Below are positions 14,722 through 50,559 of a stretch of 64,000 bases of DNA, in pieces. The notes below the pieces were generated by a model. The model made no database searches. It saw nothing but the letters and a program-made list of their open reading frames with translations, and was not told where the DNA came from. Where the stretch lies: sequence record PQ227241.1. One strand, written 5' to 3'. The number at the start of each line of letters is the position of its first letter. The stretch's first letter is position 1. Made by a program: the position numbers and the translations under genes.

Positions 14722-15228
14722 ATGAATAATCGCCAGATTTATGAAGATATGTGCGAAGCTTTAATTGTATCTAATACTGAGTTAGTAAATGGATACAGTG
14801 CTGAAATCATTGCGGATATTTTGGATTTACTAAATAACTGGAGTACCAATACTCATTGGTATCACATTGCTGATAAAACAGTTATTAGGGATATCTGGAA
14901 TTTATTCCGTAATAAAGGTAATCGTCTTCAACCTATCTTAAGTTTAGTTAGTCGATTTAAGATGGCTGTTAATGATTGGGATGGTGTGGTGAAATTACTA
15001 GCTGATTCTATTTATCCTTATCAGCCTAATTCAACTATTGTTGACCAAGAAATGTTAGCGCGATTAATTCCACGAAAAGAATTAACTGACATTTTATACC
15101 AAAATGATTGGTTAGTTTGGATTATTTGCCAATGTTTAAATATCCGTTATATTACTAATATGGTTGAATCTATCCCAGTTCAAGCTAAGCCATCTAAAAA
15201 GAAGGCGGTAAATAATAATGTTTCGTAA
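14722..15228 (+). CDS. Hypothetical conserved protein
   Basis: 168-aa ORF translationally coupled to gp149. Confidence 0.6.
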   Translation: MNNRQIYEDMCEALIVSNTELVNGYSAEIIADILDLLNNWSTNTHWYHIADKTVIRDIWNLFRNKGNRLQPILSLVSRFKMAVNDWDGVVKLLADSIYPYQPNSTIVDQEMLARLIPRKELTDILYQNDWLVWIICQCLNIRYITNMVESIPVQAKPSKKKAVNNNVS

Positions 15229-15934
15229 AATCTTAATTGATCTTGACTCACTATTAGATACACGGTTAGGAACCATTAGGTTACTAAATAAAGATGCAGC
15301 TAATAAGCTTGTTACCAATGGTCAAATTTACTGGCATAGGGAAATGGATGATTGGACTAAACTAACAGATGGTTTAGTAACTAATGAACAATTTGTCGAA
15401 GCTTATTCTAAACGTGGTGGTGAAAATACTGCTGACACTATCAATAGTTCTATATTCACTGGTATCATTCCATTTATTATTCAATTAATAGCCCAATCAG
15501 ATTTGAATAGATTAGATGGTATAGTTAATGCTAATTTTGAAACATGTCTTGAAGTCAATATCTGGCCATATGAATTGACACCAGATGCTCAAGATGAATT
15601 ACTATACTGCTTACATAAGTACATAGGTGATCATATTCAGATCACCCTGATTAATACTCAATTAACAGACCTTACTTGTTCTAGATTAAACTCTATCTAT
15701 TCGATGGCGATTATGTATAATTTTGGAGAATGGTGTAAAACCCATGTTCTTGAATTAGGACAAGTGTTGATGCCTGACTTTACCATTATTGGTCCAAAGC
15801 TATTTGAGAAAGACGTAAGTGAATTAGCTGTTGAAGATAAACAGTTTATTATCATGGATTTCCAGCTAAAGCATAAACTTAATATCGACTTTGATTTCAT
15901 CGATGCTGAATACTTTTCCATGTTTAAGCCATGA
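15218..15934 (+). CDS. HAD-like protein
   Basis: N-terminal ILIDLDSLLDT resembles HAD motif I (DxD). Confidence 0.5.
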   Translation: MFRKILIDLDSLLDTRLGTIRLLNKDAANKLVTNGQIYWHREMDDWTKLTDGLVTNEQFVEAYSKRGGENTADTINSSIFTGIIPFIIQLIAQSDLNRLDGIVNANFETCLEVNIWPYELTPDAQDELLYCLHKYIGDHIQITLINTQLTDLTCSRLNSIYSMAIMYNFGEWCKTHVLELGQVLMPDFTIIGPKLFEKDVSELAVEDKQFIIMDFQLKHKLNIDFDFIDAEYFSMFKP

Positions 15935-22607: not shown

Positions 22608-23141
22608 TTAACTTTCTAGATAACGGATTTGACCATTTTCTAGATAACGTGCTGCACCATTCTCTAATAGTCGGATAGTATCTGACGTATCATCAATACG
22701 TTGAATTAGTATATTACATTCACCATAGTAAGCATAACTACTCGACATAGCTACTATCGTGTATGGAACAATATCCGTAGTTGCATTGATTGGTGTTGTA
22801 TCGAATGAAATATCATCTGGTCCAAGCTTCCAACCTCGTGAACGGTTAATTTCTTCAGCAATCGCTTTAGGTGTTAAAGTACCAACTATCTTAAGGATAG
22901 ATCCTTCACCAATAGCTCGTGGATCAGCAAAATCTAACCGACGGTAAGTTAACATGTACTTAATGTCAGTAGTAATGTCGATCATTTCAATAAATGTACG
23001 TCCAGGCTCAATCGTGGTTGGACTAAAAAACATATCTTCAAATGTAACTGTTTCTGGTTTGAAGTTTATTTTTAAATCATCCCGCGCAAGTTTTACTAGC
23101 GCATTCCTCGATGCCATGTCATACGGAAAGATATCCTGCAT
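22608..23141 (-). CDS. gp143: Virion structural protein with C-terminal RxLE(N)G triple repeat
   Basis: 177 aa with an RTFIEM...YRRLDF family motif. Ends IRLLENGAARYLENGQIRYLES. Confidence 0.7.
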   Translation of the reverse strand: MQDIFPYDMASRNALVKLARDDLKINFKPETVTFEDMFFSPTTIEPGRTFIEMIDITTDIKYMLTYRRLDFADPRAIGEGSILKIVGTLTPKAIAEEINRSRGWKLGPDDISFDTTPINATTDIVPYTIVAMSSSYAYYGECNILIQRIDDTSDTIRLLENGAARYLENGQIRYLES

Positions 23142-48119: not shown

Positions 48120-48162
48120 TTGGATTAACCTATTTTTAAATTAGAAGATCATGATCATTACT

Positions 48163-48179
48163 GTAATATAGATCTTAAA
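48163..48179 (-). promoter_or_regulatory. phiKZ early promoter (TTTAA-N4-TATATTAC)
   Basis: Minus strand reads TTTAAGATCTATATTAC, matching the TATATTAC early motif and the copies at 60756 and 61944. Confidence 0.75.
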
Positions 48180-48205
48180 CTTTTTTTAATGTAATACAAC
48201 ATAAA

Positions 48206-48225
48206 GCCCTCCCCGAAGGGAGGGC
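48206..48225 (-). terminator. Major capsid gene terminator with UUCG loop
   Basis: GCCCTCCC-TTCG-GGGAGGGC-TTTATGTTG. It lies 9 nt after the second in-frame stop (48235), about 90 nt after the annotated UGA. Confidence 0.9.
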
Positions 48226-48234
48226 CTATGTCTG

Positions 48235-48315
48235 TTACTCTTCTAACTTCCGGGCATTACCGTCTTCCAAATAACGGATAGTCCCATTTTCTAGATAACG
48301 GTAACCCTTTCCAGC
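48235..48315 (-). other. In-frame 26-codon extension of the major capsid ORF beyond UGA (putative readthrough domain)
   Basis: After CCG-TGA the same frame reads AGKGYRYLENGTIRYLEDGNARKLEE-TAA, which matches the gp143 C-terminus. Confidence 0.75.
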
Positions 48316-50559
48316 TCACGGCTTAAGATCAGCAAGCTTACCGTTGAACTGAGTTTCGCCCATGACTTTCTGGAAGCCAGTGATCTTGAACTCTAGTGCG
48401 AACGGAATGTTGTTGACGTGTAGGTTGAACGGAATGGCCGCGATTTCGCGAGTAACCTGGTGACCACCACGGGTGATCGGTAGGTCAGCGATAACAGTAG
48501 ATACGTAGAAGAACTGACCCCAGGAGAGGATGTCGTTTTCTTGTTGTACTGCGCGGGTCGGAATTACAACTAGCTTACCATCGAATAGCTGGTTGTTGGT
48601 GGAAACGATATCGTACTTGAGATAAGCACCTAGAGTACGGTCGTCACCTTTAGTCATTAGATAGTTAGCAATCTCTTTGTCGGAGCAGAAGAGATACATC
48701 GGAGTTTCATCCTGGTTACCGGAGATAACACGGAAGGCAGCTTCAATGTTGGAATCACGGTGAGCCGGGAATAGCTCAGCTTTAACACAGTTTAGGATCG
48801 CAGCGCAAACGTCGTCCCAACGATCTTTAGACTTGATGGTGTCGATGACTTTCTCAAGATCTAGTTCTTTGTAACGATAGGTCGGACGCATTACAGCGGA
48901 TAGTGCACCTTCGATGATACCAAACTTCGGACGGTTGTAACCATTGTGTACAACTTCACGTAGTTGAGCAAGGTAGTTAAGCATGCGCTTAACAGCGTTG
49001 TTGCTGTTACGGATGTTGGTGTTAACGGTTAGAGCTTTAACAACCTCACCCGGACCTTCATCGGTCATGGTGTCCATCGGTAGAGTTACAGGAGCGTGCA
49101 TCGGGATCGGATGACGGAACTGTAGTGCACGGGTCTGTAGTAGGTGACCACGCTGACGACGGTTGGTGTTGGTGAAGCGAGTATCTAGTTCGAAACCGAT
49201 AACAGCTAGGTCAATTAGCTGATCTAGAATAGCTTTAACAGCCGGGTCAGCATTATCCATTACTTGACCATCTTCGTTTAGAACTTTATCGACGTAAGTG
49301 TCGGTAGCACCAAACTTAGAATCGCCTTTGGATAGGCTGATAGTACCGCCGAAACCAACGCTTAGACGTAGGCTTAGTTTAGCAGTCTTAAGGTCGTTAA
49401 TAACGCCATCAGCTGAACCGTCGATGAAAGTGGTATCGCCACTAACAACAAGGTCATCGCTATCGAAACGGATAACTGCGTTCCGGGTATCACCAACTAG
49501 ATCGGGCTGGAACACAGCGCGAGGTAGACGGTCAACCTTGAACTTAACAACTTTACCGCCGAGTAGAACGAATAGGTTCTTTAGACGACCAGCCGGATCA
49601 ATGGTGTCAGAAACTTCAAGCATGCCACGCTGAATGAGTAGGTTAGCATTGGAGTTACCCATTAGATCAAGACGTACGTTCGCTTTTAGCGGAGCAGTAG
49701 TGATAGTTAGGTTCTGCTCGTTCTTGATGGTGTACGGAGGAACAAGAGCCGGGTCTACGAAGAAGTCAGCATTGGAACCAGCCGGATCTAGGGCAGGAAT
49801 TAGTGCAATGCTTTCGTCGTCGAGGATGGAAGGATCACGATAGGCTTCTACCATGTTCACTTCTTCGTTATCCATCTTAACGCCGGATACTTCGTGGTAA
49901 ACGTCTTTCATTACAGCGATGTAAGGAAGAACCTGAACAACACCACCTTCAATCGGGTTGATAACGGTGGTCGGATAGATACGCTCAGCGAATTCATCCT
50001 GACGGCTAGCAGCTAGGTTATAACCAATAGTTACAACACGGAAATCACGCTGTGACTTCTCGTTATAGTTCTCTAGGCCAACACCATTTTCGAATACTTG
50101 AATGCCACCAGCAGGGCCATTGAACTGATGCTGTACAACCTTAACATGATCTTCATTAGAAGCTTTAGCTTTGGTAATACCACGTAGTGCACGGATATAT
50201 TTAGTTTCATCAGCACAGGCGATAGCAGCCATGGTAGCAGCAGTGATTTGGTTCTCACGGACACGTTCTTCACGAGCACGTACTTGAGGATCACTGGAAC
50301 TTACTCGTTCGAAACCATAGTCGTTAACGAGCATTTGCATTTTGTTATAAATTGCAGCGGCATCTTGAATGTCGGTAGCTTGCACGGTACCGAAGTTTTC
50401 ATGTGAAATGCTGCTAATAAGGGAACGACCTTGACTAACAACGCTGTCATTTAGACCAATTTCACTTTCTAGGCGGCCAATGAAATCTTCCATTGAGAAG
50501 ACTTCGTAATTCTTTTCGCCTTTGTGTTTAAACAGTTCTCTTAGGGCATGTACGCTCAT
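48316..50559 (-). CDS. gp120: Major capsid protein
   Basis: 747 aa, with propeptide cleavage site GLE163 and GC-richer, highly-expressed-type codon usage. Recognised as phiKZ gp120. Confidence 0.95.
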   Translation of the reverse strand: MSVHALRELFKHKGEKNYEVFSMEDFIGRLESEIGLNDSVVSQGRSLISSISHENFGTVQATDIQDAAAIYNKMQMLVNDYGFERVSSSDPQVRAREERVRENQITAATMAAIACADETKYIRALRGITKAKASNEDHVKVVQHQFNGPAGGIQVFENGVGLENYNEKSQRDFRVVTIGYNLAASRQDEFAERIYPTTVINPIEGGVVQVLPYIAVMKDVYHEVSGVKMDNEEVNMVEAYRDPSILDDESIALIPALDPAGSNADFFVDPALVPPYTIKNEQNLTITTAPLKANVRLDLMGNSNANLLIQRGMLEVSDTIDPAGRLKNLFVLLGGKVVKFKVDRLPRAVFQPDLVGDTRNAVIRFDSDDLVVSGDTTFIDGSADGVINDLKTAKLSLRLSVGFGGTISLSKGDSKFGATDTYVDKVLNEDGQVMDNADPAVKAILDQLIDLAVIGFELDTRFTNTNRRQRGHLLQTRALQFRHPIPMHAPVTLPMDTMTDEGPGEVVKALTVNTNIRNSNNAVKRMLNYLAQLREVVHNGYNRPKFGIIEGALSAVMRPTYRYKELDLEKVIDTIKSKDRWDDVCAAILNCVKAELFPAHRDSNIEAAFRVISGNQDETPMYLFCSDKEIANYLMTKGDDRTLGAYLKYDIVSTNNQLFDGKLVVIPTRAVQQENDILSWGQFFYVSTVIADLPITRGGHQVTREIAAIPFNLHVNNIPFALEFKITGFQKVMGETQFNGKLADLKP

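Follow-up and report, generated by a model that had tools for sequence, protein, structure and literature searches.

A conserved in-frame extension behind the major capsid gene UGA of phiKZ-like phages suggests putative stop-codon readthrough

The window analyzed here, a 64,000-nucleotide stretch of sequence record PQ227241.1, carries on its minus strand the gene for the major capsid protein gp120 (48316..50559), which in the ORF list comprises 747 codons and a TGA stop; genes annotated as major head protein in phiKZ, KTN4, and further isolates match this region at 99-100% identity. Near the 3' end of gp120, phage KTN4 and other isolates match the window at 100%, phiKZ matches it at 99.3% across 601 nt, and the 141 nt surrounding the extension described below show no difference from phiKZ. 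The gene ends GAT CTT AAG CCG TGA (...LKP-TGA), with the stop, which is the proposed recoding (readthrough) site, at 48316..48318 and a G as the next base. The same frame then continues for 26 sense codons (48238..48315, minus strand), encoding AGKGYRYLENGTIRYLEDGNARKLEE, up to a TAA at 48235..48237, an arrangement that was found on the minus strand just as the original prediction had described it. Within the extension, a module of the form (R-x-L-E-D/N-G-x-x)x2-R-x-L-E occupies 48300-48238 (minus strand), and the claimed 8-residue spacing of its three R-x-L-E units is correct, as they begin at residues 6, 14, and 22 of the extension. Positions 48204..48227 of the same strand hold an intrinsic-terminator-like hairpin, AGGCCCTCCC-UUCG-GGGAGGGCUU, with a T-rich tail after it; the hairpin is GC-rich, with 10 bp and a UUCG loop, and is located 7-9 nt 3' of the extension's TAA. 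The terminator was thus rightly placed after the second stop rather than after the UGA, and the hairpin holds this position in all relatives. The phiKZ extension region itself folds as a long hairpin, with a hairpin-prone stretch beginning ~9 nt past the UGA. Multiple BLAST matches per genome, considered as extra copies of the extension, were rejected, being a repeated terminator plus a promoter-like motif.

Among the 62 ORFs of the window with at least 100 aa, 44 end in TAA, 10 in TGA, and 8 in TAG, so that TGA (16%) is a minority stop, as had been asserted. An extension product of gp120 is unannotated in the ~70 genome records examined. In all six frames of the 280-kb phiKZ genome, the pattern R..E.G..R..E occurs only twice, namely at the C-terminus of gp143 and in the extension.

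To place these 26 codons in an evolutionary context, we compared the 3' ends of related capsid genes and found a TGA followed by a 24-30-codon in-frame RxLE ORF in 22 distinct relatives, with capsid identity down to ~60%. These relatives represent seven ICTV genera (phiKZ, PS119XW, Phabio, 201phi2-1, Psa21, PhiPA3, and Noxifer) and 15 further distinct IMG/VR and metagenome contigs, and they share the motif (R-x-L-E-D/N-G-x-x)x2-R-x-L-E. Frame-breaking indels, stops, or nonsynonymous drift in relatives had been named as findings that would refute readthrough; the result instead favors it, since the ORF is open and the TGA kept in 22/22, with indels in multiples of three only. The R, E, and G columns are invariant or almost so (20/20, 20/20, 20/20, 19/20, 19/20, and 20/20), and the conserved Arg and Gly columns are written with up to five synonymous codons (CGT, CGA, CGC, CGG, and AGG for Arg; all four GGN codons for Gly). 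Moreover, pN/pS in the extension is 0.63 in frame 0, versus 0.83 and 1.03 for the shifted frames of that alignment. The corresponding value for the capsid body is 0.30, which indicates a weaker constraint in the extension, where synonymous sites are near saturation (pS 0.63) and constraint outside the motif positions is weak. While the first stop is invariably TGA, the second varies among TAA, TGA, and TAG. No in-frame start codon is conserved in the extension across the aligned relatives; an internal ATG is present in the extensions of 201phi2-1 and PhiPA3. Judged by these sequence comparisons, the extension is under protein-level purifying selection and, given its conservation in relatives, is far beyond what chance would produce. 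One supporting argument of the original prediction, that a C-terminal proline slows peptide release, fails as a general one, because the last sense codon before the UGA is variable and encodes Pro in only 8 of the 22 relatives, the rest having Ala, Gly, or Val.

The identity of the first stop is linked to the presence of downstream coding sequence. TGA is the stop in all 25 capsid genes that are followed by a conserved in-frame ORF, whereas 20 of the 21 genes without one stop with TAA (Fisher p = 4e-12, uncorrected for phylogeny), and on the capsid tree the joint state of TGA plus extension changes at least 4-5 times. The extension has been lost in some lineages, namely L048 and L050. In L048, which is nested in the RxLE clade, a clean ~57-nt deletion has left a frameshifted remnant, GTARFLE*, and the TGA has become TAA; this change is recent, falling on a very short branch of the capsid tree. 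In the genomes compared, TGA and extension thus strictly co-occur and are lost together. The base following the stop (+4) at the 25 TGA sites is A in 16, G in 6, and C in 3, and U occurs in none of them, versus 9 of 20 TAA sites (p = 2e-4, no phylogenetic correction). U at +4 is the strongest termination context in E. coli. We found no conserved hexanucleotide context 3' of the UGA, and none of the relatives compared has a sense codon in place of the junction TGA.

The second occurrence of the motif in the phiKZ genome, in gp143 (CDS at 23141..22608, minus strand), is part of an ordinary ORF and, unlike the extension, involves no recoding. gp143 ends in IRLLENGAARYLENGQIRYLES, and its last 21 residues, RLLENGAARYLENGQIRYLES (22611..22673, minus strand; ORF translation), carry the same (RxLEDGxx)x2-RxLE module at the extreme C-terminus as the extension does, with R, E, and G invariant at the same positions. 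The predicted match between the two proteins therefore stands, although the resemblance is not specific to gp143, both holding one widespread and unnamed 21-residue module. The gp143 tail is conserved over 19 gp143 homologues, with R157, E160, R165, E168, and R173 invariant, and the module forms the C-terminal end of gp143 and of its 18 aligned homologues. Aligned to these tails, the extension matches column for column without internal gaps, and R6, E9, G11, R14, G19, and R22 are invariant. Each 8-residue unit begins with R and has E as its fourth and G as its sixth residue, and three such units stand at the protein terminus. A profile search with the module recovered 70 further proteins at E <= 1e-3, metagenomic proteins that end in the module, whereas Pfam and PDB sequence searches returned no family or entry, and a full-text literature search for RLLEDG returned unrelated words only. 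One small module-bearing protein (P0062, on contig L069) has its own ATG and two stops upstream, with uninformative neighbors. An AlphaFold2 model of the 30-residue module alone gave a weak beta hairpin at pLDDT 64, which is not interpretable, and the module as a tail within the gp143 model reached pLDDT ~70. gp143 itself is labeled a lysis regulator or virion protein (phrog_2935, weak DUF7941), and the remainder of the protein resembles the baseplate protein gp127 (9xqd, TM 0.60-0.69) and not the capsid protein. On the alignment and profile evidence, the module is a real element of proteins.

Different cargo stands in frame behind the TGA in two other capsid lineages. In contig L026, the capsid TGA is followed by a 203-codon ORF with a Big_2 Ig-like domain (PF02368, E = 4e-9); an ATG lies three codons past the TGA, and no usable ribosome-binding site was found for this ORF. 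In PCH45 and SPLA10, a conserved ORF of 49 and 56 codons, respectively, follows the capsid TGA, in which 10 of 25 identical residues are encoded by different codons, while the two other frames are closed. Further PCH45-type relatives sought in IMG/VR amounted to a near-identical copy only. Ig-like cargo was seen in the sister contig L026 alone, and the 26-residue phiKZ extension gave no Pfam match, Ig-like or other.

Synthesis of the 26 codons as a separate small peptide, through reinitiation or a non-canonical start after the UGA and without fusion to the capsid protein, is an alternative that we regard as very improbable. Termination-reinitiation is known in bacteria and viruses, and both the L026 ATG and the internal ATGs of 201phi2-1 and PhiPA3 would be compatible with it. 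However, the relatives share no in-frame ATG, GTG, or TTG close to where the ORF begins, and the phiKZ extension, in agreement with the claim that it has neither an ATG nor a Shine-Dalgarno sequence of its own, contains no ATG or GTG, has its sole TTG at codon 17, and lacks a Shine-Dalgarno sequence at a workable distance. Starts overlapping the stop (GTGA and TTGA) would open a different frame. Further, a separate peptide would leave unexplained why TGA and not TAA is required and why U is avoided at +4, and the three unrelated cargos all lie in frame 0 directly past the stop.

Decoding of the UGA by a dedicated mechanism, such as selenocysteine insertion, a phage-altered release factor 2, or ribosome hopping, by which the long form could even be abundant, is in our estimate very improbable. 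The host has selenocysteine machinery, RF2 alone reads UGA, and the region ~9 nt past the UGA is hairpin-prone. Set against this, an Rfam scan of the extension region at a permissive threshold yielded weak terminator-driven matches only and no SECIS, no conserved structure was evident, and matched take-off and landing codons are absent. A suppressor tRNA is likewise absent from the phiKZ genome, whose seven tRNAs are Thr-TGT, Asn-GTT (two copies), Asp-GTC, Met-CAT, Pro-TGG, and Leu-TAA, and the window contains none. The cryo-EM chains, moreover, are ordered to residue 747 in a tight six-helix bundle (PMC11297242), and the absence of any relative in which the TGA has become a sense codon points to a need to keep the long form in the minority.

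An untranslated nucleic-acid element, for example a protein-binding site or a 3' UTR element acting in stability or termination, would account for the long hairpin in phiKZ, for a weak shared stem in the RNAalifold consensus of 18 sequences (-5.2 kcal/mol), and for the C that precedes the first Arg codon in 18 of 20 sequences, yet we find it hardly credible. In the weak stem, the first Arg codon region pairs with the second GAC-GG, because Arg (CGN) can pair with Asp-Gly (GAC GGN), and folding was no stronger than in sequences that encode this peptide with resampled synonymous codons (mean z = -0.34), so the RNA-element reading was dropped. It is also opposed by residue columns that are kept through multiple synonymous codons, including CGN/AGR switches, by indels that are all multiples of three, by the occurrence of the same peptide motif at the ends of bona fide proteins without nucleotide similarity, and by the lack of an Rfam match for such an element. 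The least credible explanation is that the extension is a relic, i.e., an ancestral capsid tail cut off by a nonsense mutation and now decaying as dead sequence, since, despite its weaker constraint relative to the capsid body and its loss in L048 and L050, 22 lineages with near-saturated synonymous sites retain an open ORF and an intact motif, the truly dead L048 copy was partly deleted, frameshifted, and given a TAA along a very short branch, and a tolerated, uninterrupted ancestral tail would lead one to expect sense codons at the junction, which no relative has.

We favor, with a probability of roughly 80% and without evidence beyond sequence, the reading that the gp120 UGA is a selectively maintained leaky stop that would give a minority of capsid subunits a 27-residue tail. 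Most ribosomes would stop at the UGA to give the 747-residue gp120, and a minority would insert an amino acid there, most simply Trp through a near-cognate host tRNA, and read 26 more codons. The long product would be a 774-residue precursor, with a tail of three 8-residue R-x-L-E-D/N-G-x-x units. This readthrough interpretation, as originally proposed, is supported by the conservation of the extension, by the joint gain and loss of TGA and extension, and by the other in-frame cargo in two lineages. Readthrough as a decoding event, its efficiency, the inserted residue, and the incorporation of the long form into virions remain inferred. As no conserved stimulatory structure or hexanucleotide was found, readthrough would depend on basal UGA leakiness, which is unmeasured in Pseudomonas during phiKZ infection.

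The published gp120 model ends at residue 747, with a C-terminal arm at the capsomer center; in hexamers these arms make up a six-helix bundle, and in pentamers they extend to gp244, the outer decoration protein (PMC11297242). Given this location of the arm, a few tens of the 1620 subunits would display the tail at capsomer centers, probably facing outward. Our best guess is that it would serve as a surface-exposed binding or docking peptide, a function inferred from the module ending other virion-type proteins and from the sister lineage having an Ig-like domain at the same place. Direct protein evidence for a translated extension was not found in the literature, whether in proteomics or in ribosome profiling; published phiKZ virion proteomics and cryo-EM models are based on the annotated 747-residue gp120, with extra density unreported, and published transposon-sequencing data provide per-gene counts only, without resolution within 78 nt. 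The original prediction knew of no description of such an event for phiKZ-like phages, and our literature search also found no prior account of translational readthrough in phiKZ or jumbo phages, the matches being to transcriptional readthrough or to RNA viruses.

Among the closest parallels is the A1 protein of Q-beta (Fiersviridae), where, as proposed for phiKZ, the first stop at the end of the coat gene is a leaky UGA; it is read through at a few percent to give a C-terminally extended coat protein present in few copies per virion, whereas the phiKZ case has no experimental demonstration. Among tailed dsDNA phages, recoding at the capsid gene's 3' end gives T7 (gp10A/10B) and T3 (gene 10) a minor, C-terminally extended major capsid protein, and the T3 extension is Ig-like (PMC5009743), which parallels the Big_2 cargo of L026. 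Unlike the phiKZ proposal, T7 and T3 use a -1 frameshift into another frame and not in-frame stop readthrough, and the extension sequences are unrelated. The Listeria phages PSA, A118, and A500 (cps/tsh) and Lactobacillus phage A2 similarly add a C-terminal segment to a fraction of the copies of their structural proteins by recoding near the stop, several such phage sites having a slow-to-decode CCC_UGA (PMC5009743). The Ig-like domains that programmed frameshifts append (Fraser et al. 2006, cited in PMC5009743) belong to this group as well, and the cargo is modular, as here. All of these are +1 or -1 frameshifts, in contrast to phiKZ, where frame 0 would be kept and the UGA itself decoded. 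The coat readthrough domain of luteoviruses and poleroviruses is, like the putative phiKZ tail, a minor surface-exposed extension made by stop readthrough, and it mediates partner interactions; these are, however, eukaryotic plant RNA viruses that use UAG, long-range RNA stimulators, and a large domain.

More tentatively, and with considerable doubt, nucleus-forming jumbo phages may in general use UGA readthrough after the capsid gene as a modular system for displaying lineage-specific cargo, namely (RxLEDG)3, Big_2, or the PCH45/SPLA10 peptide, in which (RxLEDG)3 would be a new and widespread virion docking or adhesion module. As the module is common to the lysis regulator gp143, it could possibly link the state of the capsid to the timing of lysis or to a shared binding partner.

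phiKZ is a model nucleus-forming jumbo phage whose capsid is known at near-atomic detail and whose virion proteome has been published several times, and the extension has still remained unannotated. To our knowledge, the known recoded major capsid genes of tailed dsDNA phages use frameshifting, and the phiKZ case, if confirmed, would be the first known stop-codon readthrough of a major capsid gene in such a phage. Confirmation would also (i) add a low-copy surface component to the phiKZ capsid, (ii) establish a new short peptide module that many phage structural proteins carry, (iii) point to the capsid C-terminus as a site where insertions occur naturally and are tolerated, usable for peptide display on jumbo phage heads, and (iv) make conserved TGA-plus-ORF signatures a feature that could be mined systematically in phage genomes.

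The major capsid gene, gp120 (50559-48316, minus strand; 747 codons), ends in GAT CTT AAG CCG TGA, after which frame 0 stays open for 26 sense codons (AGKGYRYLENGTIRYLEDGNARKLEE) up to a TAA at 48237-48235 (minus strand), with Arg-x-Leu-Glu (RxLE) units starting at extension residues 6, 14, and 22. Downstream of this TAA lies a strong hairpin (48227-48204, minus strand) that has UUCG as its loop and is followed by T-rich sequence, and because this terminator is 3' of the second stop, the transcript is expected to contain the extension. The original prediction had described this arrangement, the 8-residue spacing of the three units, their likeness to the C terminus of gp143 (23141-22608, minus strand; ending in IRLLENGAARYLENGQIRYLES), and TGA as a minority stop (10 of the 62 window ORFs of ≥100 aa, versus 44 with TAA), and all of these factual elements are correct. 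The window belongs to a genome of the phiKZ type: over 601 nt, KTN4 and several other isolates are 100% identical to it, and phiKZ is 99.3% identical. A TGA followed by a long open in-frame stretch (59 codons) occurs at only one other window ORF (15218-15934, plus strand). Immediately 3' of the hairpin (48150-48205, minus strand) is a motif, TTTATG...(A/T-rich)...ATCTATATTAC, which recurs at ~13 places per phiKZ genome, is kept across genera, and is probably a phage promoter sited just downstream of terminators.

Capsid 3' ends from annotated genomes of seven genera (Phikzvirus, Pawinskivirus, Phabiovirus, Serwervirus, Tepukevirus, Miltoncavirus, and Noxifervirus), together with IMG/VR and metagenome contigs, gave 22 distinct extension-bearing sequences, with capsid identities down to ~60%. 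All 22 have (i) a TGA capsid stop, (ii) a 24-30-codon in-frame ORF directly 3' of it, with the pattern x3-5-R-x-[LYM]-E-[DN]-G-x-x-R-x-x-E-[DE]-[GS]-x2-3-R-x-L-E (for example, TGKGTFRKLENGTTRYLEDGVARRLER in PS119XW, SQPGNVRRLEDGSIRYSEDGTTQRYLE in Psa21, and LPAAPSSRKFEDGSLRSTEGGVPRTLES in Noxifer), and (iii) a terminator hairpin 3' of the second stop. The extension is not annotated in any of the genome records examined.

The stop codon and the extension vary together. Among 37 distinct capsid genes of the clade and outgroups, TGA is found in 23/23 with a conserved downstream ORF and TAA in 14/14 without one; after this set was enlarged by eight distant chimalliviruses and SPLA10, TGA occurred in 25/25 with a conserved ORF versus 1/21 without (uncorrected Fisher p = 4e-12). 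A maximum-likelihood capsid tree requires at least 4-5 changes of the joint state. The clearest is in the metagenome contig L048 (RCUK01000188.1), which the tree places inside the RxLE-bearing group with 100/100 support and in which a clean ~57-nt deletion (L048:4388-4450) takes out the first two units, the stop is now TAA, and the remnant GTARFLE-stop is shifted out of frame; L048 is a natural loss-of-extension variant. A second loss, also with TAA, is seen in L050. Conversely, the contig L026 has TGA and a new cargo although the sequences around it in the tree have TAA. In L032, ASRLRLEP lies 3' of a TAA, a possible extension remnant. In Ralstonia phage RP12 (L063:1319-1369), a capsid TGA-A precedes a 15-codon in-frame ORF, RIGNTSPDGFNEFGA, which may be due to chance. 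The base after the capsid TGA is A in 16, G in 6, C in 3, and U in none, whereas U follows 9/20 TAA stops (versus 0/25 TGA; p = 2e-4); in E. coli, termination is most efficient with U at +4. In no relative is the capsid/extension junction occupied by a sense codon, which suggests that a fully extended capsid would not be tolerated; such intolerance would fit the packing of the C-terminal arms into a tight six-helix bundle within every hexamer (PMC11297242).

The extension bears marks of protein-level constraint. When the first 20 of the 22 sequences are aligned by codon, both Gly columns are 20/20 Gly with all four GGN codons in use, Arg fills the first two of its columns in 20/20 and 19/20 sequences (CGT, CGA, CGC, CGG, AGA, and AGG), and Glu fills its columns in 20/20 and 19/20. 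The relatives, in line with the original prediction, keep the reading frame, with synonymous turnover in conserved columns and length differences that are multiples of three without exception. Uncorrected pN/pS was 0.63 in frame 0, versus 0.83 and 1.03 in the other two frames of the same alignment; it was 0.30 in the last 60 capsid codons, indicating that constraint on the extension is centred on the motif residues.

Independent initiation, which would give a separate small peptide, is disfavoured: neither an in-frame start codon nor a ribosome-binding site for it is conserved. Start codons overlapping the stop (GTGA/TTGA) were rejected since they open a different frame, as was ribosome hopping, for which matched take-off and landing codons are absent. 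As for dedicated decoding, none of the seven phiKZ tRNAs reads UGA, and Rfam, RNAalifold, and resampled-codon folding of the extension region found no SECIS. One of two tRNA-Asn(GTT) genes (L044:19558-19644 in the phiKZ segment; phiKZ 269558-269644), 87-89 nt, is unusually long for class I. The simplest mechanism, which we infer, would be decoding of the UGA at a low percentage by the near-cognate host tRNA-Trp, as for the Q-beta A1 protein; readthrough of 1-3% among the 1620 subunits per capsid would yield roughly 15-50 tailed subunits. An RNA-only element is argued against by the Rfam scan of the extension region (nothing relevant), by RNAalifold (one stem, -5.2 kcal/mol, explained by the complementarity of CGN, for Arg, to GAC GGN, for Asp-Gly), and by folding against same-peptide synonymous-codon resamples, where native sequences did no better (mean z = -0.34, 22 sequences).

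Other cargos stand behind a capsid TGA. In L026 (4918-5532; IMG/VR contig 3300043122_000192), a Gly/Asp/Thr-rich linker at the capsid C terminus and TGA precede a 203-codon in-frame ORF, the first part of which is an Ig-like domain of the Big_2 family (PF02368, E = 4e-9, exceeding the gathering score). Its ATG at codon 3 has AAGGG merely 1 nt upstream, whereas the following gene has a canonical AAGGAG-N6-ATG; L026's four closest relatives have TAA and nothing 3' of it. Sister-clade capsids lacking an extension (L027-L029, L037, L053, and L057) have Thr/Gly/Asp-rich low-complexity ends (for example, ...TTADSGGTTTTP), possibly linkers that no longer have a cargo. A conserved post-TGA capsid ORF is also found in a second lineage of nucleus-forming jumbo phages, unrelated to the first: Serratia phage PCH45 (L068:1337-1489; 49 codons, LSEIFKDEVLDGFALPA...TVDTEQGNPIELER) and Salmonella phage SPLA10 (L070:594-767; 56 codons, LHEIFKGEVLGGFALPA...TVDTEAGRPIQLEK), whose capsid genes end in TGA-C and whose capsid C-terminal regions are 86% identical, share the pattern LxEIFKxEVLxGFALPA...TVDTExGxPIxLE. 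Over 48 aligned codons, 25 residues are identical, with different codons at 10/25, and numerous stops interrupt both remaining frames. From these cargos, recoding of the capsid UGA appears to be a recurrent, modular feature of the capsid family, paralleling the programmed frameshifts by which phages are known to add domains, Ig-like ones among them, to their structural proteins (PMC5009743).

The extension (module at 48238-48300, minus strand) and gp143-family tails (22611-22673 in the window, minus strand) align without internal gaps, save a variable one-residue spacer before the third Arg, to the consensus R-x-L-E-D-G-x-x-R-x-L-E-D-G-x-x-R-x-L-E, with R, E, and G invariant; the core pattern occurs nowhere else in the phiKZ genome. 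A 27-position profile matched 70 proteins (P0048-P0117) at E ≤ 1e-3 among 1.84 billion representatives, namely, large fibre- or tail-like proteins and a ~50-residue family starting MxLGxGxGV. Units, with the variant (R-x-L-E-D/N/S-G-x-x)x3 widespread in metagenomic phage-like proteins, come almost always in threes, at extreme C or N termini or in tandem sets separated by Pro/Gly linkers. Searches of Pfam and PDB found no counterpart, and structure prediction gave at most a weak beta-hairpin or beta-bridge pattern; this looks like an unnamed structural-protein module. gp143 is reported to regulate lysis by binding the holin (PMC12894885) and has a virion-protein annotation as well; in predicted fold, its globular part resembles gp127, an outer-periphery protein of the phiKZ baseplate (9xqd, TM 0.60-0.69, E = 8e-7), so that the lysis regulator seems to be paralogous to a structural protein of the baseplate. 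Since the capsid C-terminal arm touches the outer decoration protein gp244 in pentamers (PMC11297242) and the corresponding position in a sister lineage holds an Ig-like domain, we infer that the tail would lie exposed on the capsid exterior and serve in binding or docking, its partner unidentified.

We put at roughly 80% the probability that readthrough of the gp120 UGA yields a minor, 774-residue capsid protein with a 27-residue tail, as originally predicted; the comparative evidence is strong, but direct protein evidence is absent, and the remainder is shared by dedicated non-basal decoding, a relic, an element that acts only as RNA, and a small peptide translated independently. Searches of 8.4 million papers and preprints turned up no account of translational readthrough for phiKZ-like phages, nor for the major capsid gene of any tailed phage. 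Minor C-terminally extended coat proteins made by recoding are known in Q-beta (A1), T7 (10B), T3, and Listeria phages, a kinship that gp120 would share. What would be new is in-frame UGA readthrough in an HK97-fold capsid gene of dsDNA jumbo phages, along with interchangeable cargo behind the capsid UGA and a new peptide module.
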